Below, piece by piece: positions 1 to 45,906 of a DNA stretch of 64,000 nt. The first letter of the stretch is position 1, and each line of letters starts with the position of its first letter. Location: NCBI GenBank assembly GCA_976226885.1, contig OZ320321.1:73966001-74030000 (forward strand), in the 5' to 3' direction. The stretch comes from Iphione sp. A-MEVVRFRX5 (taxonomy: Eukaryota). The notes under the pieces are model-generated. The model saw nothing but the letters and a program-made list of their open reading frames with translations. It had not been told where the DNA came from and searched no databases. The position numbers and the translations under genes are program-made.

Positions 1-2251
1 CAATTTAAATCAGATTGTAATTTTAATCCAAGATATGTAAAATGGTTTACACACTCCAGTTTACAGCTCCCCAAATATAGTGTTATCTCTTGTTCTCTTC
101 TAACACGCGAAAAGTTCATTAGTTTGGATTTTGTAGCATTTACCAGTATCCGGTTATTCCTTGTCCAGTTAGCCAACCTGTTCAGATCTTCCTGCATATG
201 GTCAGAGATGTCCGCATAACAATCTTCAACAGTCACGATCGCAACATCGTCTGTGTACATCACACATGTTGAATACCTTAAACACTTAGGAAGGGAATTG
301 ATGAAAATTACAAACAACAATGGGCCCATTATCGAGCCTTGCGGTACACCACACGTTAGTTGCATACTACTTGATTTTACTCCTCCTATTATCGTTTCTT
401 GCCATCTGTTTTACAAATATCCCCTAATCAAGGGAGCCAAACTCCCTGCCCCAATTTCAATTAACTTTAAAATAATTATCTCGTGATTTACACTATCAAA
501 AGCTTTGGAAAAGTCAATAAAACAGGTAATAACCTTCTTACTGGCATTTAAACCGCCCGTAATCTCTCCTAATAAGTGATAAATAGCAGAGTCTGTACCC
601 CTTTTTTGCCTAAACCCATACTGACACTGACTCAACAAATTATTTTCCAAATAATTCATTAAAATATTGTAAATTAATCTTTCAAAAATCTTTACCGGCA
701 AAGGGATTTGGCTTATTGGACGGAAATTATTTAAGTCACTTAAATTTCCAGACTTATGCAGAGGGGTTACATATGCCATAGTCCATTGTAACGGAAATAC
801 CCTTTGATGAATTCTCATTAAATAAGTGTAAAATCTCAAACAACAGAGTCAGGAATACTTCTTTCAAAAGGTGAACGGGTATATCCCCAACAATACTTGC
901 CTTATTTGTTGGCACTTTACATATCACTTTTACCAGCTCCTGTACATCTATTTGCACCAGTTGTAGTCTGCAATCTGCATGTGTCTCCATGCTGTATTCT
1001 TCATCGCCCAGCTTGGCTGCAATAGTCTTACCAATGGAGCTAAAATGGATATTAAATGCGTCTGCCATTTCCATATTAGATAGACAGTTACCATTAGCGT
1101 CTACTAAGCTTGGTTCTTTCCTTACCTTTTTATAACCATATATATTTTGCATATCATTCCAAAACTTCGACGTATTACCATCAACTTTCAATAACTAATT
1201 TTCAATGAATGATTTCTTCTGATTATTCATCAGTTTTCGCACTTGATAAGTTAGGATTTTAGCATCTAACTTATCTTCATAACGTCCATGTTTTCTAAAC
1301 TGCTTGATCGCATTATGTTTTTTCTTACTAAATCCACTATCTCACCAGTAATCCAGGGGGCTGCATTAGCCCTATGTCTTACAGTTTTTGTTTTTACCAT
1401 TGTATTGAACATACATTTTATTCTGGCCTCCATGATATCCCATTTCTTCTGGATATCTGAGGTACTATAAAAGTCAGCCCACTCTAATTTCATAGTGGCC
1501 TCGTTAACATCTTGTATAGATAAATCATTAAATGTTCTATAAGATATTATCTTTCGTTCTAATATTCCGGATCGTGTTACAGGCACTACCACTTCAATAA
1601 GATTATGGTCACTTAAAGTACATTCTACTACCTTTGCATAAATTTTACCCTTATAGTTTGTCCAACATAGGTCAATACTTGTTACCGACAACGATGTAAC
1701 TCTAGTCGGACCATTAACCAGTTGAACCATACCAAACTCCCTCAGATACTTCGCAAACTTGTTTTTCTTATAGCTGGGGCATAACCAGTTTATATTCACA
1801 TCACCTATATACACTGCATTAGACATATTATCTAAAGTGTTTAGATCTTGTAATTTCGATATAAAACCATCGACTTTACCTTTTGGCGGTCGATAAATAT
1901 CCATTATCAACAATTTACCATTTAGCATATAAACTGTTACTCCTAAGTACTCTATATCTTTGCGATTAATGTTGTACCAACCACATTATAATTCGGTAAC
2001 TGCTTATTACTTATATAAATCAAAATTCCACCACCATTACGTGCAGTTCTGTCTGCGCGAACTAATGAGTAACCTTCAACATTTAATACACTATCATTTA
2101 CATCCGAACTTAGCCATGTTTCTGTTAAGAAAAAGATATCTAGTTGTGACTGTTGTATCAATATACATATTTCATTGAACTTACCTAAGATACTCCGTAT
2201 ATTTAGGTGGTAGATTACAAGACCGATCCGGTTCCTATCCATTATTGACAC
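1..2251 (-). pseudogene. ORF2 of element A (APE endonuclease + reverse transcriptase), frameshifted
   Basis: APE motifs HLNIRS, LTETWL, GGGILIY, YRPP, GDVN, SDH in ORFs 1952-2251 and 1266-1928. RT motifs FRPISQ and DFSKAFD in 411-839, GVPQGSIMGP at ~325-352 and MYTDD at ~246-262, read manually on the minus strand. Confidence 0.9.
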
Positions 2252-2770: not shown

Positions 2771-3478
2771 CTAAGTAATGTGTTTATCATTCTTCAGACT
2801 AGTCGGATTTTCCATACGCAGGTGGCACCCATCATAATATCTGCCAAGACGATGTCTCCAACCGCCATTCTTGCATGTATGTACAGTCATACTTGTCCAG
2901 GGTGTCGGCACACCGAAACAGCGGTTCATAAGCACGATCCGCTGATTCAACGTGGTGACCGCCGTCAGCAACATTGCCTGTATCATGTTAGCAGCTGCTA
3001 CATAACCTACATCGTCATTCAGCCATTTATAATAGGCAATAAAATCAATGCAGAATAGTGTACAAAACATTACCACAGATTGTGGATATCGCCACTGTAC
3101 TGCATTATGAACCATCCATAATGTGTATTCCACTTCAGAAATTGTTATGTTAGCATCGCCGTACCGTTGAACCACATAGGCCCATCGTTCACCATCGTCA
3201 CAGTTCACCTGTATTCGTTTGGTAATGTTATTACCACCACCTAGTATCAGTATAGTCCAGGGATAGGGATTCCAGTTTCAACGAATAATGATATCGCACA
3301 AGTCTTCTAACCTTGCACCAGGATAGTAATGGACTTGTACTGCCCATCCAAACCTTTCAAATATCTCCTGGAGTTTTCTGTCATGACTACTGCTGAATAC
3401 ATGAACATAACGTGAATACTCCATGCTTACACGTGTAGTGAAACAGAGTGACCAGTTCTGCGGACGTGACCCACCCAC
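2771..3478 (-). pseudogene. Stand-alone SGNH-hydrolase (esterase)-like ORF of element A, one in-frame stop at 3278-3280
   Basis: ORFs 3278-3478 and 2771-3208 are in the same frame. Reading through the TGA gives block I VFSSSH, block II YPGA, block III ILGGGNNIT and block V YDGCH. Confidence 0.8.
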
Positions 3479-3500
3479 CCCACCACAGGGCTAATTATAG

Positions 3501-4994
3501 TTACGACCCCATTTGGGCATCCATAAACAGGTCCTCTGATTCATTTTCACGCAACTGACTTCTAATTTTACAGAGTAGGTTTCCCTGAGCATTTCTACCA
3601 GGGAATGTACCTGAACGAACAGTTTTCGATCTTCTTCCCACTCCTGCCCCCGAGAAATCATTCGGAGTTGCTTCTACCAATTGATGTTCTCCGGTCTTTG
3701 ATAATTCGTCCTTTAAATTCTGAGATGCGAATTTTTCATACAAAATCTCTTCCATTACTTCTAGTTTCAACTTTTTCCAGTCATCAATTTTTGGTAGATC
3801 CTTTCTAATTAATTTCAATGACTGATAGTCCGTTGTATGTAAACTTAAGGACTTTTTTGCAGTGGTGCCCGCCGCTTTGCATTTAGCATACGTATATGCT
3901 AGCTCTGCACTATCAAAGTGTTGATCGTCCCATTTAAATTTACATGGATAGAGGTTCGAAAATACTGACTCTTTACCAGCAAAGATTATTCGATCTGTCT
4001 TGTTAGATCTTTGTGGTTTGGGCTTAGTAGATGTTACGGGAATTTCAATGTTGCTTTCGTCCAACCATGTACCGTCTACCTGAATTTTATCACCACGAAT
4101 CTTTATATCTGCTTCGGGATTCTCCTCACGAACAAGCTTTGCAGCTGATCTTAGTTTTTGTTGTGTTTTACGTTGATTTATGGTTAGATCCTGGTTCAAC
4201 CAGATATTCTTCCCTTTTAATTTTCCTTTCACTCTCATAATCTGATCCTTCACATTGCATCTCACAAATCTCAAATAAATTAGAGGAATACCTGCTACAT
4301 TCTTACGCTGAAGCATGTATAATTCATCGATGTCATGGGTAGTTACCCGCACACCAATAGAAGAAAACAACTCAATCACGTAGTCTAACAGCTCCCTATC
4401 ATCGGGGATAGCAAGACTGTCAATAAACATACCATTTTTTCTTGATCGACGGTCAAGTTCTTATGTTAATTTACTAGATACACTTGTTTTATTTTGCTTT
4501 AGAGCCCTTATTTCACTCCTTAAGTCTGCGTTTTCACGTTTTAATTCAGCCACATTTTCCTCCAAAGTAGATATTTTGATTGTGTGTTCACTCAGAGTAT
4601 TTATGCTTGCATCTACTTTTGTGGTCAGAGAAGCAATATCTTCAGCTATTTTTGTGGTTTCTGCTAACCCTGTTTCTCTTTTTTTTATTATTTCGGACAT
4701 GAGACTGTCAAATAATCTATGTACCATAGATGGTTCTTCGCTAACAGATACTTCAGTTAACGGGCTATTGTCCTTCTTTCTTTTACCTTTGCCTGTACAC
4801 TCACTAGGCGGAGTCGATGGCACGTTACTAAAAAAGTTCCACAAATTTTGTTGCTTAGATTTTGCTGCATTATCTGCAGATTCTGTATTCGATTTAGTCA
4901 AATCCGATACAGTACCCGTCTCGCCAGTGTGGCCTCCTTCACCAACCATTGTTTCCAACTCCGATGGGCTATTTTTAGCAGCCATCGTCAACAA
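3501..4994 (-). pseudogene. ORF1 of element A: coiled coil + L1-ORF1-like RRM/CTD + C-terminal NADAR domain; one in-frame stop at 4461-4463
   Basis: 4461-4994 and 3501-4430 are in frame across TAA (SKLT*ELDRRSRKNGMFID). NADAR motifs at ~3550-3995: FSNLYPCKF, DSAELAYTYAK, EKFASQNLKDELSKTG, LVEATPNDF(S)GAG, GRNAQGNLLCKIRSQL. Confidence 0.85.
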
Positions 4995-5479
4995 TGATAC
5001 CTAGCGTAGTTACCTGTCGAGTTTCGTCTGATTTCTACCGAATTTTTACTGTTTCTAGCACCTAAGTACTGGTCTAATGTCTATATATACGTTCCTGGAA
5101 CGCTAACAAACATGTATACATAAATTCAGCAATTAAAACTTTCATATACCAACCTCTTTTACACTTGAACCACGAGCGGCACACCAAACCCCTACCTACA
5201 CCTTGCCAGCCTCAGTCGGTGATGGCGGTTGTAGGTCGAACCCATCCCCATGAAGCAACTCCTTTTTTCTTTTATCATCTCGCTCTCTGTCCTCCTCTGT
5301 GAGGCCTGCGATGCTTTCCACCTCTTGAGTGTAGAATCTGTTTAACAAGGTGGCGAAGCTCATACCGTGCCTTGTCCACCACTCCACCACTCAAGGGCCT
5401 TCCTTGCAGCTTCACGACAGTTTTCAGCTGATGTAAATAGTACCATGACATTGGCATACAGGATCAGCGTAGTGTTTTC

Positions 5480-6440
5480 GGATACTCGTGTGATAGGTCA
5501 ATGAATACTGTGAAGAGTAGGGGGCCCAATAATGACCCGTGAGGTACCCAACAGTTAATACATGATTCGGCTTGAATTCTCCCAGTTCCTGTGCTATTTT
5601 GTCTCCTATGCCGGGGAAGAAGTCATTTAAATAATTCCGTGTCAGCTTCTGATCAATATTTGTCTCTCCGCCATGAAGCTGTATGGTCAGTTTCCCCATT
5701 TCCTTGAGACCCAGATACTCCCACATCCTCTCCCAGAATTGATTTGGATCATCTCTGTGGTCGTCAAGCGTTTGCTGGATAAATTCCCACTTGCAATTGT
5801 GAATTGCACATTTCACCGCCCTTGTCCAGTCTTCACCGTTTCCTGAGGATTTGGCGTTTCTAAATGCTCTGTTCCTCGTGTTTTTCATTTTGATGATGTA
5901 CATCATGATCCAGGCACTTGTTTGGGTACCTGTATTCATAGAACGTCATGATCCAGGCACTTGTTTGGGTACCTGTATTCAGAGTACGTCATGATCCAGG
6001 CACTTGTTTGGGTACCTGTATTCATAGTATGTCATGATCCAGGCACTTGTTTGGGTACCTGTATTCATAGTTCGTCATGATCCAGGCACTTGTTTTGGTA
6101 CCTGTATTCATAGTACGTCATGATCCAGGCACTTGTTTTGGTACCTGTATTCATAGTACGTCATTGGGCGCACAGACTATGAATTATCAGAAATATTGCA
6201 TTTAGCAGAAAAGTCAATTTTTCGTTTACCCCTTCTTCATTCCAGAGTCCAGTTCATGTGTGTTACAGTATTTCTAATGTTTTCATCAGTGAGCCTATTG
6301 TAACATCAGAGTTGTCAGTGTTTAATGTTTGGTCCTGCCATTATCTTAATTCCAAAATTAGTGCTGACCCCTATTACATACTGATCAGACAGATGCTCTT
6401 CTGACACATTGGCTTCCAGGATACTATTGTGAGGCCTTTG
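5480..6440 (-). pseudogene. L2/CR1 ORF2 fragment (end of APE domain and APE-RT linker)
   Basis: HLSDQYVIGV (SDH-like) near 6390, then AWIM, QFWERM and LNDFFPGIG linker motifs in ORF 5424-5939. Confidence 0.65.
5904..6166. repeat. 43-bp minisatellite, 6 copies (CATGATCCAGGCACTTGTTTGGGTACCTGTATTCATAGTACGT)
   Basis: Unit starts at 5904, 5947, 5990, 6033, 6076 and 6120. The unit is ORF2 coding sequence. Confidence 0.95.
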
Positions 6441-8865: not shown

Positions 8866-10304
8866 ATGGTTTGGGTTTATATATATAGAGAGTGAGTCCA
8901 GTAGGACGTTTCAGGCTGTGGATGACCAGCAGACGGGGCTACAACCTTGTGTGACAGCTCGTTAGAAAGCTCTTGATGATGCTTTCCAATGGTGTGAGAC
9001 ACGTGTGTGTACTTTGAACGATAGCGGAGTGATGTGCGGACCACCGTGGGCCAGCTAAGGGATAGGACTCTAATTAGGATGAAGCGGGCCACCAAGAGGG
9101 TGTGTATACGAAATTTAATCTCAATCAGCAGATGTTGGTTCAGCTCCCAGGGGGTTGGTCTGGCACCCTAAGGAGTCAGTGTGGGCCCCTGCAGGCTGGC
9201 CAAAGGGTGAATATACTATAAAAACTGCGGTGGCATCGGCGGATGTTATTGCAGCCCTCACCGGCTTGTCGGGCACTGTCGGGAGTACGTACGGCCACTG
9301 GTTTATCAAAATCGAGGTGCTGAATGATCGGATGCAAGCTAAAATTTGTTCCAGCAGTGCTTATACTTATAGAATGTCTAGAACGAAATGTATGTGTGGA
9401 GAACTTGTCAGAATCGAGGTGCTGGTTGGTAAGGTAAAAGTAAATTTATTTCGACAGTTTTGACACATATAAAAGGTCCAGAACAGTTTTCCTTCCCTGT
9501 CAAGTGAGCTCTGGAATCAAATTCAAGCAGAAAAACAGTGCAGAGAGAGATCTGGAATCAAATTGAGGCTGAAGACATCGACAGACAGAAATGTGTGAGT
9601 GTGAGGTCTTATTGGCTATATAGTTGTGGGGGCTCTACTTTGCTACAATCCTCTGCTTTGCTGGAAATCCTGGGGGTTCAACAGCAGAACTGGAGGTGTC
9701 AGCAGGAGTTGTTCTCTCCCCGGCATCCAGGAGCGCTTAGTTCTGCCCTACGGTACACAATCACACCTCCGCCTCTACTCTTGCATCCTTCTTTTCATAC
9801 TCGTAGTAGCCTAATATATAGTTTTGTATTTGTACAGCTGCATCCGGAATTGCGTCTGACAGCCAGCTTTCAGTAAGGATGAAGATGCTAGGTTTCTACG
9901 CCCTGGCTAATATTTTTACTTCATTTTTTTTTTCAAGAGACTACAGATATTTAAGTGATGGATTTCGACCAACGATAACGCATAGCGATCAATATGCAAG
10001 AATTTGGGGTAGCAAAGCAACGAATATATAGTTATAAGCAGATTGACATATGTATTGCTGAATACCTAAGTGTACCGTTCGTTTTGAGAAACAGACAACA
10101 AAAGGAGCATGAAAAAGTAGATCACAGATAACTCTCCTTGGGACAGACATCCTGGTGTTATTCTATCACAGAACAGACGAGTAAATACAGTAGTGGGCTA
10201 TGAGAACACCTCAGCCATCGAAATTTCCCTCCACCGGCTGTCTTGAATAGGCATGTTACAGTACCAGGACTTGACGGAGTTTTAAGTATTGAAGAAACTG
10301 TAGT

Positions 10305-11200
10305 TAATAATAATAATTAATAATTCTGCGCCCCTTTGGCTATTCTTAGGGGTCATTCTTGTTCCTTAAGTACAGAGTAGCTCCTACTGACCAGGTACAC
10401 ACAAGTAAGATAGGCTAAACTCTAAAAGATACATTTGACCCTAGACATAGTAGTGAGTCACCTGTATAATAACAAACCAATTAAATACACAATTAAATAC
10501 ACAAGCATCTACTATCTTCTGCATCATCACCACCTCTACAACTCAGTTACATTCTCCGATCTGCTAAGACCAATGGTACCCTAGATAATCATGACCTGGA
10601 CATTAACCCTCATCTCACTACACTGTCAAAGATCATGCACAATATATGCAAACATATGTCAATCACTCAGTACCCACCGCCACATACTTGGGAGAAAGCC
10701 AATCATTCAATAATCCCTTGGGTAGTCTTCTCCTCTCCTTAAGTCCACTGGGCAGAGTTCCCCATTGTAGTATTCCGCTGTTGTTTTGGGCCTCACCACC
10801 TTACCACTCCTCCTTCTCCCTTCCCTAGTGACGGAAGTGTGTTTCTCAGGGAGTAACCCGAGCTGCATGAGCCTGTTGCTTACTGCCACCCCCTCCCCTC
10901 GATCAAATCTCCTACCCCAGGAACTCCCACTCTACTCTGGAACCTATTTGGACTCTGTCAAGAGTTGGACATCAGACGAGTCTGGCACACCGATTGACTG
11001 CAATTTGCAGTTGCATGATGTCAGACGAGTAGAAACCATACAGTGATATAGAAGAGTACATCAGCTGTGTGAGAACAAGGTATTTGAAGAGCATGATCCT
11101 CACATCTAGAGGTAGTTTCAACTTGACCCTTGCTAGCCACAATGAGGCTGTCCACATCTTCACAATGACAGCATCTCGCATCTATTGAACCGCAGTAGCT
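10305..11200 (-). mobile_element. 5'-truncated L2/CR1 3' fragment (post-RT C-terminus + 3' UTR)
   Basis: ORF 10972-11181 (LFKYLVLTQLMYSS...LQIAVNRCARLV) resembles the C-termini of the other ORF2s. An (ATT)n-like tail lies near 10305-10325. Confidence 0.6.
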
Positions 11201-19266: not shown

Positions 19267-21002
19267 CTATTTGTTTGCAGTTAGTTGAGACCGAACGCCC
19301 ATCAGTACCTCACCCAGCAAGTTTCTACCAGGGCAGTTATCCGTTAGCGCGTCATGCAAAGGGGTGCCCCACTGTTCACCAGTCCCAAGTACATGGTTCT
19401 GATCGATAAAGCAAATATGCCGTGATCCAGTTAAAATTAATGCATCGCGGGCTACAATGTTTTCCTGAAGGTACTTGGCCTATACATTTGCTAGTATTAC
19501 CTTCAAACGTGATTCCCATGTTTGATTTGCTTGCATTTTTTCGGAGGTTCGCTTGGCCTCAGAGATACTTCGACAGTTGTTTACACTTTTTTTGAGTTTC
19601 AAGTCTCGCTCTTCTCGAGACAATAGCGAGATTGCAGCCATTTCCGGCGTGGCATGTTGTTTATCATCAACAGTCACCGGGCCTATATTTTGCGGCGAGA
19701 AGAGTGTGTTGTCAGCATCAAATTTATATACCATGTCTGTTACATGAGTATTAAGGGAATCGTCTGACAGGTAGGTTGGTAGTAAGGCCTGTCAAGTGGC
19801 GAGTATTTTTCTCCATCCACAATCAGGTCCACCCCTCTGACAGTAGCTTTGCTTCCCTGTCCACGTGCTTTCATTGCCAGCCTTTGTTGTTTTTTGTTTA
19901 TGTCAACAGCTGCGGGTGGGAGGTCCTCCTTAACGTAGATGTCCATCGTGTCGCCTGACCTAAGCTTATGCCGGTTTCGAAATATTAGATTGCGTGCCTC
20001 AAGCGAACTAAGGAGTACACCCACAGGGAGATTGACCCCCGATTCACTGTAGACAATGCAGTCAGACACTTCATCTCGTCTGATTCCTGCCATGGAGTAG
20101 AACAGATCTGCAAGGAAGTCTTTTAGGCGGGGCCTGTTTGCTTTGGGAATCCCTTCAATTACGAGACGCCTGCGCCTATCCTTAATCTCCAGGCATGTTA
20201 GATCAAGTCGAACCTCGTTGTAATCCTCTGTCAATGCCTTTAGCTTGACTTCAATGTCCGCAATCTTGCTGTCAAGGGCTGCTGTCAATGTTGCTTTAGG
20301 TTATTTCTGCTTAGTTATGCACTGATCGAGTGACAGTTTTAAGCCTTTGACGTTGTCCTTGATAGAGTCCAACTCACCCATAAGTTTTTGCTCCATGTTG
20401 CTCACAGCGAATCTGATTTCATCCAAGATCTGCTGACTGACTCCTGTTGGGGTAGAGACGATCGGGGAAAGGATAACACGCGGTTCCTGAGTGCCAGAAG
20501 GGATCATCGGTGTAGAGCTCATCAGTTCATCCCCTCGTTTAAACATGGGCTTATTGTGCAGACCATCAGACTGTGGATGATTAGATCGCGGATCCTTAAT
20601 AAGCGGGGGACACTCGGCCGAGACGGTGTCATTGTGGCTGACAGTCGCTCCAGTTTGGAGGTAGGTCCCTATTGTTGTGTTTCCTGTCTCAGCGGTCGAA
20701 TGGGTAATTTCCAAGGAGCTTGTTTTGTAGTATGCATCTTTCGTGCTCATAGGACACATAGACAGCATGTCAGATGGATTATTAGAATGACTTGCAAGTT
20801 CGGCTAGTGTGAGTCTGGTCAGCTTGACCGTTGGATTCAAAGTATGGTCCTTCTGCGAGATCGTCATCTGTCGACCATTGCTTTGATTTTCGGTCAAGGG
20901 CAGATAATCCACGCTGTCTGCAGTCCTGAAAGTATTTCCAGCCCGCGTAGTGGACCTAGTGTTTTGCATTTTGTTATCTTTAGTGACGTCGTGACGGCCC
21001 AT
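19267..21002 (-). pseudogene. ORF1 of element C: coiled coil + RRM/CTD + divergent NADAR
   Basis: 20301-21002 and 19740-20288 are in frame across one stop (EIKDRRRRLVIEGIP). After frameshifts: YKFDADNTLFSPQN...TPEMA...AKYLQEN...LILTG...VLGTG...PGRNLLGEVLMGVRSQL* ending at 19267. Confidence 0.8.
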
Positions 21003-23685: not shown

Positions 23686-25231
23686 TTAGTTCTTGTCCAT
23701 ATTCCAGTTTTCCTTGATGTACATTTCCCTGAGGGTCATCAGAGCTCTCCCAACCTTGTTTGCCCCTTGTTGTTCATTGCCTCTGTCACAGCTATCCCAC
23801 AGATTAGCTCCTGATCCAAGGTCTGCGTCCTATGTCGACTCAACTAAGTATAGATATTCGCTCCTTCTGAGATAGTCAAGTAAGCTAGGATTTTGCTGCA
23901 ACTTACTGTATGTGATGTCTCAAATCAGGTCCGCACTGTTCTTTTCCCAGTCCTCAGTCGTTGTGATAAGTTGACGAAGTGCCTTATCCTCGAGGGATTA
24001 TTTTCATTGAGGATTTCACCAGCTATAGAGGTCTCCCCTGCGGTAAGTGCCTTCTGATGTTGGTATGCCTGCTCTGCCGAATTATATTCTGTACCCTTGT
24101 ATACGACTTTACATTTGTACAGATTTGAAACGGTCACATGTTCACCTCTGAACGCCAGTGTGTGCTCATTGTGGTAACTGTTCGCTTCCTCGAGGGATAG
24201 AGCTGGCGGTAAGGCCGATAGTCTGTCGTGACAATAGGATATGCAGTCTACCTGAATGCTAATCCCTTTCACGCTTGCCCTGTGGCCTAGCTCACGGGCG
24301 TGCCGAGCTATTGTTTGTAGGTCTCGGTTAATTGCCTGCAGGTGTCATGGAATATCCTCACTAAGATATACATTCCGATATTTTCGTGAATGTTTCAGTC
24401 GAAATCTCCCTTTGTAAACCTGATTTCTGGACCAAATCACCTTGAAAACAATCAAGACTGTTCTCGATTTCTCTCTGTTGTACTTTCCTCCTCGTCCTCA
24501 TCCACAGCTTCATCTATGTAGCTGCAGATTTCACTCACTCGTTCAACTAGATTCTCATTCGTCCTTTCTGGTAGCCCTTGTATTATTAGGTTGGATTCTC
24601 TTTCCCTTAATTCTTCATTTTGAACATCGTCCTCCCCACTTACAGTTGATTCCTCAGCACCCTCGCTGTACTGGATAATTTTCTCAACCGATCCCTCTAT
24701 CTTGTCCAGTCTCTCATTAATTTTGGTCGAGAAGTATTCGACATTCTTGTCAAAGTTTTTTTCAACTTGTTCCAGTCTGCTACATATCACTTCAAGTCAT
24801 TGAGCCACTGTGCTTTGAAGACTGTCATAAGTTGTTTTTATCCGTCTTACAGTTTCCAGAATTTCATCACTTTTAAAATGGGCAAGTGTATTTAGCATTT
24901 GTGTGTGCTGCTTTCCGATTGATTTCAGTCGGCAGCTAATATCCACTATTCCTTGTTCAATGATTTCCATGCTTGCTTTGGGGATATTTCCTTCCCTGCG
25001 GTCATCGTTCTGCTTATACCGGGGCTCCTCCACGTCGTTCCCGTGGCCCTTGGGCGATAAAGGAGGCGATCGCTCGGTATTTGAAAGTCCATGGCTTGTA
25101 ACGGTTGTATCCTCGATACTTGGATCTTTGTCCCCTGAGTTTTTCTTCTTTTTGTTCTTTTCCTGAGCTTTTTTCGACCTTGTATGGTTCGTCATGCCTG
25201 TTTGCCTTACTCTCAGTTCATATCTTTTCAA
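23686..25231 (-). pseudogene. ORF1 of element B with C-terminal NADAR; RRM partly deleted
   Basis: ELRERESNLIIQGLP in 24452-24790. LAFRGEHVTVSNLY...NSAEQAYQHQKA in 23925-24272. After a frameshift: SKLQQNPSLLDYL...LVEST*DADLGSG...GANKVGRALMTLRE, stop at 23686. Confidence 0.8.
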
Positions 25232-45099: not shown

Positions 45100-45625
45100 T
45101 ACCAGTGCAGGTTTGTTTTCTCTCCACTGCGGCCAAGCTCACACCAAAAAATACGGGATAACACCAGTTCTTGATATCGAACAGTGAAGTCCACAATTTC
45201 TCCAATCTGAAACACGGAGAAAAGTCCAATTACTTTGATTCTTCTCGAGTTTTTGCAAGAATTCCACCCATGACGTCCCCCGGCCATGACCGGGTCTCTA
45301 TTGCCTTGTCAGCAGGCAGTGTCTTCGGTCGATTTCAATTGGTTCCCTGGCCTCCTCGCTATCAGACTGTCTGGTGCCTGGATTATGTAATCTCTCAACG
45401 CATTGTCTCCACAAATACGAGCTTTGTTACTTTGAAATGCGTGTTCTATTGACTTGTATGACGATAAGTTACTTCATCCGGGTACAAACTGGACAAACAA
45501 TACTTCGGCCCCCTGAATACATAGCCGTCTTCCGTCGTCTTTTTAGGAAACACTTCCTCAGGTTTCAGGTCATCCGGTAGATCATTGATTGTATTCTCAG
45601 TAAACCACTTCCCATCCACTTTTAG
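45100..45625 (-). pseudogene. ORF1 C-terminal relic with NADAR domain (element F)
   Basis: Manual translation: LKVDGKWFTENTINDLPDDLKPEEVFPKKTTEDGYVFRGPKYCLSSLYPDEVTY, then after a frameshift KSIEHAFQSNKARICGD. Confidence 0.7.
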
Positions 45626-45906
45626 TGAACCCCCCCCCCCTTACTGTGGCTAAGTGTCCATTTTTCTTGCATATGCTGCAATTGAATGAAACAGTTTATG
45701 GGTGAATTGTGCTACCTCGGGCATGTCTTCTGGCAGCCTTATGTCAGAGTACTCCTCACGTTCTCCTGGACTCAGCCTCCTGGAAGGGCGCTGCCAACAA
45801 GTCTAACTTGTAGCCTGCCACTGCCTGCAAAACCTCCTTGTCAGAGGTCAACGCTGCTCACACCGGAACATAAGCAGCAAGATTGCCAGCAACGAAGACT
45901 ATTTCC

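Follow-up and report, generated by a model that had tools for sequence, protein, structure and literature searches.

What is a NADAR domain doing in the first open reading frame (ORF1) of an animal retrotransposon, and what might the element gain from it? The question arises from a 64,000-nucleotide stretch of the genome of Iphione sp. A-MEVVRFRX5 (assembly GCA_976226885.1, contig OZ320321.1, positions 73,966,001 to 74,030,000), referred to here as the window, which opens with a long interspersed nuclear element (LINE) on the minus strand that we call element A. A preliminary description of this DNA had seen a LINE with a NADAR domain fused to ORF1, a separate ORF for an SGNH esterase, and an ORF2 for an apurinic-type endonuclease (APE) and a reverse transcriptase (RT). 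That layout was confirmed and is found throughout the family to which the element belongs. Judged by profile searches and structure models, the ORF1 protein (ORF1p) is an L1-type chaperone, composed of a coiled coil, an RNA recognition motif (RRM) and a C-terminal domain (CTD), that continues, after a disordered linker, into a NADAR domain of the YbiA family. Element A is itself an inactivated copy of this family of three-ORF retrotransposons, which lack long terminal repeats (LTRs). Because the copy is dead, any function is that of the family and not of the locus, which is without functional consequence. All analyses were made on natural sequences, with no consensus and no repaired reading frame.

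An L1-like ORF1 with a NADAR domain

ORF1 lies at 3501-4985 of the window (minus strand, as do all features of element A given below) and was delineated by translation, by a Pfam match to NADAR, by a profile search of the PDB, and by an AlphaFold model searched with Foldseek. Its translation begins with a Ser/Lys-rich N-terminus and a heptad-rich stretch (about 4985-4464), and coiled-coil families of Pfam match weakly at residues 120-176. An in-frame TAA (4463-4461) separates the coiled coil from the RRM, and is followed by ELDRRSRKNG, a region of about 140 residues with the L1-type RRM and CTD (about 4430-4040), a variable, disordered linker, and the NADAR domain (3549-3974, residues 153-294 of the translation of window 3501-4430), after which ORF1 closes with a stop codon at 3503-3501. 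The motifs quoted in the preliminary description (FSNLYP, SAELAY, LVEATPNDFSGAG, GRNAQGNLL and IRSQL) can all be read in the translation of window 3501-5000.

The identity of the C-terminal domain is carried by several lines of evidence. The Pfam profile PF08719 (NADAR) matches it far beyond chance, with an E-value of 1.2e-19 and 71.6 bits where 35.1 is the cut-off, and the match spans positions 9-163 of the 163 in the profile; intact copies of the family score 79-88 bits (E 1e-22 to 1e-25). We then aligned the RRM-to-NADAR part of element A with 18 stop-free genomic homologues (alignment A1, 19 copies), and the resulting profile retrieved from the PDB the NADAR of Phytophthora nicotianae (8BAU, 8e-11), Escherichia coli YbiA (2B3W, 1e-9) and chains of human L1 ORF1p (5e-3). 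An AlphaFold model of element A's own 309 residues, with no repair of the natural sequence, reached a predicted local distance difference test (pLDDT) score of 79, falling below 50 in the linker at residues 130-144. Foldseek placed this model closest to 8bau (E 1.3e-6, template modelling (TM) score 0.68) and 2b3w (E 2.6e-6, TM 0.74), with the RRM-CTD of L1 ORF1p as the next matches at probability 1.0. The L1-ORF1-like RRM and CTD that had been proposed from the letters alone are thus backed by both the profile and the model comparison; Pfam Transposase_22 gave no match at E<=0.1 in ORF1 of element A or of the intact copies.

It was also of interest whether the domain retains what an active enzyme would require. 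Residues were equated through a HMMER alignment to 8BAU and their roles taken from work on the P. nicotianae enzyme, in which E43, K50 and E125 are catalytic and W89 and W133 contact the pyrophosphate (PMC11543638). The equivalents in element A are E176, K183, E253, W218 and W260, respectively. Element A retains the three catalytic residues and carries Q177L and W260S, the latter being the Trp-to-Ser change already noticed in the preliminary description. Across the 19 genomic copies the positions of E176, K183 and E253 are invariant or nearly so and both Trp positions are conserved, the equivalent of W133 being kept in 17 of the 19 and in 148 of 175 NADAR domains from public data. Those 175 domains, drawn from 150 cluster representatives, have the first Glu in 89%, Lys or Arg in 89%, the second Glu in 86% and the Trp in 85%. 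The Glu in its last strand assigns the domain to the YbiA subfamily (PMC11125620).

The NADAR domain evolves more slowly than the RRM-CTD and is under purifying constraint. Its median pairwise nonsynonymous divergence (dN) is 0.43 versus 0.60 for the RRM-CTD, with synonymous divergence (dS) saturated (>2). As most pairs are saturated in this way, the dN contrast alone is reported; the single close pair usable for dN/dS gave an omega of 0.18-0.28, from very few changes.

The family and its place among LINEs

A six-frame search of the Iphione genome with the 309-residue piece returned 3708 first-look candidates, of which at least 132 were scored as matches. Nearly all of these 132 relatives span RRM through NADAR, at 40-60% identity, and about 90 (about two thirds, by hand count) are without a stop codon, in open frames of about 500 residues. 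The closest relative of element A in the genome is only 59% identical. Intact three-ORF copies, L032, L035 and L036 among them, share a common layout: an ORF1 of 490-600 residues, a spacer of 40-80 nt, a middle ORF of about 230-270 residues that we call ORFX, a second spacer of roughly 0.5-0.7 kb (about 550-730 nt in three intact copies) and an ORF2 of about 940 residues. Elsewhere in the window, further RRM-CTD-NADAR profile matches lie on the minus strand at 23725-24479 (E 5e-21 and 8e-9), 19279-19725 (8e-5) and 45455-45742 (2e-8), and no ORFX match was detected at any of the three.

The family extends well beyond this genome. An exhaustive HMMER profile search of 1.84 billion cluster representatives gave 24175 matches at E<=1e-3, of which 358 reach E<=1e-30, and most of the top 150 span the entire RRM-CTD-NADAR profile. 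A simpler protein homology search, begun from a full ORF1 or from alignment A1, had returned no relatives, a blank that carries no weight beside these thousands of matches. The nearest Atlas clusters bear the label Annelida. Three other public samples supplied genomic contexts. In ERZ26222911, four near-identical 4.9-kb copies of a two-ORF NADAR LINE sit on separate contigs (L041-L044:6857-11750); their ends are sharp, an AATAAA signal is present, the poly(A) tail has 0-13 A, and the esterase ORF is missing. This element looks like a recently active relative that does without the esterase ORF and uses another type of tail. Several two-ORF NADAR lineages are present in ERZ25767047, and ERR14368249 contains a copy with three ORFs, the middle one being recognised by the ORFX profile at 1.9e-15. 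From these contexts it follows that NADAR accompanies ORF1 in every sampled lineage, and that some lineages have the esterase cistron, others that appear active being without it. ORFX is best described as a lineage-specific accessory that active relatives can lack. Some ORF1 proteins of ERR14368249 (P0146 and P0138; L052 and L054) continue for about 200 residues past the NADAR domain with no Pfam match, an extension that could be a further module.

The kind of LINE that carries this ORF1 was approached through ORF2. In intact copies it encodes APE and RT only (PF14529, PF03372, PF00078), and Pfam together with a CCHC pattern search found no RNase H, zf-RVT or CCHC motif in it. Searched against the solved L1 ORF2p, intact ORF2 of the Iphione genome gave no match at E<=1e-3, its best PDB match being R2 at 3e-11, and an ORF2 relative from another assembly reached only 1.7e-14 in the L1-type test. 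Tails are of microsatellite type, (TAA)5 in element A and (TAA)n, (TA)n or (ATACAA)n in other copies. The closest independently found ORF2s are at most 31% identical and include PHD-fused proteins. A quick maximum-likelihood tree of 27 ORF2s, drawn with unlabelled relatives only, set all seven NADAR-linked ORF2s, which come from four assemblies, on one side of a branch with 100% support in the Shimodaira-Hasegawa-like approximate likelihood-ratio test (SH-aLRT). Three ORF2s of unlabelled state fell on the same side; a NADAR ORF1 was then found for two of them, the third being without a recognisable ORF1. The best ORF2 match overall likewise has a NADAR ORF1. In the tree this clade adjoins PHD-fused, esterase-type (CR1/L2-like) and fish ORF2s. 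On the strength of the APE-RT-only ORF2, the microsatellite tails, the PHD and esterase relatives and the tree, we provisionally take the family to be a distinct CR1/L2-like clade (Jockey superfamily), ancestrally equipped with a NADAR-ORF1, and not an L1/Tx1-like one. What counts against this placing is that the clade name rests on architecture and on unlabelled relatives, and that the oyster elements considered in the last section are called Tx1 (PMC12477816).

Among the relatives, one contig deserves mention. L056 (ENA ERZ25073802) carries at 9047-11125 a second LINE, whose ORF1, of the classical CR1/L2 style with a coiled coil and an esterase (CDSN, GVND and DDKHL blocks), stands upstream of an APE-RT ORF2, and the same contig also holds one of the closest ORF2 relatives that lack NADAR.

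ORFX is a stand-alone, esterase-like ORF of SGNH fold at 2771-3424, recognised by translation, a family hidden Markov model (HMM) and fold matching. Its frame in element A (3478-2771) is a single ORF with a conserved ATG at 3424 and an in-frame TGA at 3280-3278, and about 25 C-terminal residues are lost through a frameshift; the family HMM matches window 2774-3445 at E 5.5e-109. Blocks I, II, III and V are represented by SSH, PGA, GGNN and DGCHL. Single-sequence Pfam searches gave no match for ORFX of element A or of the intact copies, and Lipase_GDSL was matched weakly by 4 of 18 homologues (best E 6.6e-5). In the alignment of those 18 homologues (A2), S26, G49, N78 and D211-G-C-H214 are at least 90% conserved, and the same S, G, N and D-x-x-H blocks are kept across lineages that are 43-72% identical. 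The AlphaFold model made from the 18 genomic homologues (pLDDT 80) puts the S, G and N sites after strands 1, 2 and 3 and the D-x-x-H before the last helix, as in SGNH blocks I, II, III and V. All 79 Foldseek matches to the model at E<=1e-3 are GDSL/SGNH hydrolases, and VIA-align gave Z up to 16.6 over about 175 residues with a root-mean-square deviation of about 3 A. The separate SGNH ORF named in the preliminary description is in this way confirmed as to its predicted fold. By analogy with what has been proposed for CR1/L2 esterases, a putative role of ORFX may be membrane- or lipid-related.

Element A runs from window position 5198 down to 1 and extends about 1.1 kb beyond the window start. 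It is full length, about 6.3 kb, with its 5' junction at about 5198. A 5' untranslated region (UTR), read from the sequence, occupies 4986-5198; ORFX and ORF2 are separated by a non-coding spacer of 528 nt (2243-2770), likewise read from the sequence; and ORF2, APE followed by RT, begins with an ATG at 2242 and fills window 1-2242, as judged from Pfam matches (Exo_endo_phos_2, Exo_endo_phos and RVT_1) and tblastn. The tblastn comparison, using the intact ORF2 of another copy against L031, a stretch that takes in 5 kb beyond the window start, shows ORF2 of element A to be broken by at least four frameshifts into at least five frame segments, in addition to the stop codons in ORF1 and ORFX and the W260S change in NADAR. 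The last ORF2 residue falls about 530 nt past the window start, and a 3' UTR of about 600 nt ends in GCCAGTGAAAATAAAGATTG and then (TAA)5, at about window -1128 (L031 about 3872). Both flanks consist of ORF2 of another LINE, upstream at 5199-5939 (minus strand) and beyond the 3' end at L031:2500-3865 (minus strand), for which reason element A is read as a nested insertion; the interrupted ORF2 frame of this unrelated host LINE picks up again after the (TAA)5 tail. CAAGGTG is present at both junctions (the 5' copy at 5205-5199) and may be a short target-site duplication.

The 3' ends of the family carry a recurrent small feature. An 11-nt mini-hairpin of the form GGAY-NTR-RTCC occurs in two to five copies just 3' of ORF2 in all eight elements checked (L031:4165-4453, which is window about -835 to -547; L032:2720-2827; L034:7081-7172; L035:6916-7089; L036:1975-2314; L037:756-905; L038:1744-2011; L039:7217-7314). 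The hairpins are on the sense strand in all eight, with one opposite-strand match, in L031, and position 4 of the stem covaries strictly among lineages as C:G or T:A. After them the elements close with CCAG..AAATAAAG and a microsatellite. The hairpins are probably a 3' recognition signal for the RT, by analogy with stringent CR1/L2-type LINEs.

NADAR domains also occur outside LINEs. The Haliotis rufescens genes LOC124129589 and LOC124138828 (proteins P0121 and P0282) encode seven and three tandem NADAR domains with no RRM-CTD, and each repeat scores about 120 bits against Pfam, far better than the LINE domains. In the Iphione genome the best match to the abalone multi-NADAR protein is at C22:27636287-27636880 (L057), with 47% identity. 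The abalone models may represent NADAR genes of the host or result from the merging of gene models, and the existence of non-LINE multi-NADAR genes suggests that ADP-ribosylated bases matter in such animals, wherever the mark comes from. We considered whether the LINE NADAR had been captured recently from a gene of the abalone kind and saw no sign of it, the identity being only 25-27%.

What the NADAR domain may do

No erasers of guanine ADP-ribosylation on DNA and RNA are known to us other than the NADAR hydrolases. Characterised NADARs, YbiA included, hydrolyse guanine-ADP-ribose on both nucleic acids and are inactive on ADP-ribose at phosphate ends (PMC11543638, PMC11833690), and phages use orphan NADARs against DarTG1 (PMC11825919). 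In active members of the LINE family the domain would be envisaged as enzymatically active, an N-glycosidic ADP-ribosyl hydrolase. As part of a protein that covers the LINE RNA in cis, and with several domains probably exposed on each coiled-coil oligomer, it could remove base-linked ADP-ribose (on guanine N2, possibly on cytosine) from the RNA of the element, from its cDNA as this is made, or from target DNA in single-stranded form. Uncorrected, such marks would be expected to block reverse transcription or translation, and it is for this reason that NADAR would serve in anti-defence or repair, much as phages use orphan NADARs against DarT1. The mark itself could be written by an enzyme of the host, of a symbiont or of a pathogen.

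That the ORF1 NADAR erases base ADP-ribose from the element's nucleic acids in this manner is a reading to which we would give about an even chance. It draws on the conservation of the catalytic residues, on the predicted fold, on the published activity of NADARs on guanine-ADP-ribose in DNA and RNA, and on the parallel with phages. The preliminary description had suggested a counter-defence or, alternatively, protection of the intermediate of target-primed reverse transcription; in the sense of phosphate-linked ADP-ribose at DNA ends the latter is weakened, given that NADARs do not act there. A stronger version, in which the whole LINE clade survives by means of its own ORF1p eraser and so would be the eukaryotic counterpart of the phage orphan NADARs that defeat DarT1, seems to us unlikely. 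Were it true, many 'animal NADAR' proteins in databases would be ORF1 proteins of LINEs and not host genes.

Several findings weigh against an eraser of base marks. Element A itself is dead, with W260S, the stops in ORF1 and ORFX and the frameshifts in ORF2. Copies in the Iphione genome have Asn or His where the canonical Asp (D130) would stand, three residues ahead of the Trp, so that substrate or rate may differ from those of characterised NADARs; in the 175 public domains the position is D in 104 and N in 46. No Scabin- or pierisin-like writer (PF22596) was found in the genome, a weak negative from an exon-by-exon search in which the controls were silent. YbiA also acts on small-molecule N-glycosides, which makes a substrate other than nucleic acid possible.

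This last point leads to the idea that the domain is functional on a small molecule (free ADP-ribose or NAD-derived N-glycosides), or is an ADP-ribose reader that steers the ribonucleoprotein (RNP) to chromatin or DNA breaks. E. coli YbiA acts on riboflavin intermediates, and the LINE domain belongs to the YbiA subfamily by the Glu of its last strand; the exchange of an Asp that contacts the pyrophosphate for Asn or His in the Iphione copies, and the failure to find a guanine-ADP-ribose writer, weak as that negative is, would fit equally. However, all characterised NADARs, YbiA too, hydrolyse guanine-ADP-ribose on DNA and RNA, the LINE domains keep the full catalytic set and more than the binding residues, and fusion to a cis-acting RNA chaperone puts the domain on nucleic acid, so a small-molecule or reader role seems to us somewhat unlikely. 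It could also be that a base mark is indeed erased, and that it is written by bacterial, symbiont or other toxins of the pierisin, ScARP or DarT class and not by a host defence, the LINE NADAR then serving a general repair shared with the host. The Haliotis rufescens non-LINE genes with seven and three NADAR domains, the comparable match at C22 of the Iphione genome and, again as a weak negative, the lack of a detected endogenous Scabin-like writer speak for such an origin of the mark. Yet thousands of LINE copies that keep a costly domain over deep time are hard to explain if host NADARs suffice, and with 25-27% identity to the abalone repeats the LINE NADAR is no recent copy of them; we consider this explanation quite doubtful.

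Finally, NADAR and esterase might be neutral passengers, captured once and without a role in retrotransposition, an idea to which the active relatives without an esterase ORF and the decayed NADAR of element A lend themselves. The constraint data point the other way: dN is lower in NADAR than in RRM-CTD (with dS saturated), 85-89% of 175 domains, spread over 50%-identity clusters, retain the catalytic residues, the NADAR trait follows an entire ORF2 clade, and the S, G, N and D-x-x-H blocks of ORFX persist through lineages of 43-72% identity. Neutral carriage thus appears very improbable.

The role of NADAR in animals has been stated as an open question (PMC11125620). Here abundant, long-lived animal retrotransposons keep a NADAR that is, by sequence, catalytically intact on the very protein that coats their RNA, which offers a concrete and testable setting for eukaryotic base ADP-ribosylation, be it in transposon defence or in nucleic-acid damage. 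A count of 'metazoan NADARs' may include proteins of transposons, as the 358 cluster representatives at E<=1e-30 illustrate. The set of modules known from CR1/L2-like elements also gains a third enzymatic accessory layout, that of an L1-like ORF1 with NADAR and a free-standing esterase cistron.

Comparison with known systems

NADAR in a LINE had been noted before. A recent study (PMC12477816, Genome Biol 2025) states that ORF1 proteins of several Crassostrea gigas LINE families, labelled 'Tx1' in Repbase, appear to carry a YbiA-family NADAR, and the novelty suggested in the preliminary description for NADAR in a non-LTR ORF1 was therefore too strong. Our literature search found no further mention of NADAR in LINE ORF1 beyond that study and general papers on esterase ORFs, and no description of the three-cistron layout of NADAR-ORF1, esterase and ORF2. 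The family is thus catalogued but essentially uncharacterised, and its design barely described. The oyster elements share with ours the placing of NADAR within ORF1p of an invertebrate LINE; they differ in being labelled as L1 group, whereas the Iphione ORF2 looks CR1/L2-like, a comparison made from the published description. They are treated in one sentence and a supplementary figure, without analysis of architecture, catalytic residues, distribution or esterase.

Esterases in LINEs are known as ORF1 domains of CR1, L2 and RTEX elements (PMC5408684), and that paper cites Kapitonov and Jurka 2003 for esterase and PHD ORF1 LINEs and Schneider et al. 2013 for the ZfL2-1 esterase structure 4C1B. 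With these elements the Iphione family has in common an APE-RT-only ORF2 of about 950 residues, microsatellite tails and an SGNH-fold esterase encoded upstream of ORF2. In contrast, the Iphione esterase has a cistron to itself and no coiled coil, and ORF1 is L1-like with NADAR. The likeness of ORFX to the CR1/L2 ORF1 esterases lies in the fold, the sequences themselves showing no significant similarity (E 0.64 for 4c1b, and E 0.3 in hhalign with one esterase ORF1); descent from such an esterase and a capture of its own would fit alike. With L1-type (type II) ORF1p (2YKP, 2LDY) the family shares the order and fold of coiled coil, RRM and CTD, and ELDRRSRKNG precedes the RRM in element A; it differs in adding a C-terminal enzymatic domain, in having no Transposase_22 match, and in a partner ORF2 that is not L1-like.

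Another retroelement with an acquired YbiA-family NADAR is a Gypsy lineage of Ectocarpus, in which the domain stands at the N-terminus of Pol and retrieves bacterial hits (PMC12477816). There the element is of LTR type and the domain is in Pol, where ours is a LINE with the domain in ORF1, and the two acquisitions were probably independent. Compared with NADAR enzymes at large (8BAU, 2B3W, the DarT1-linked antitoxins and the phage orphans), the LINE domain has the same fold and the E/K/E constellation of the YbiA subfamily. It differs in being fused to the RNA chaperone of an animal retrotransposon, and in the Asn or His that takes the place of Asp. With the phage orphan NADARs (PMC11825919) the parallel would be one of logic, that of a mobile element carrying a proposed eraser of base ADP-ribosylation.

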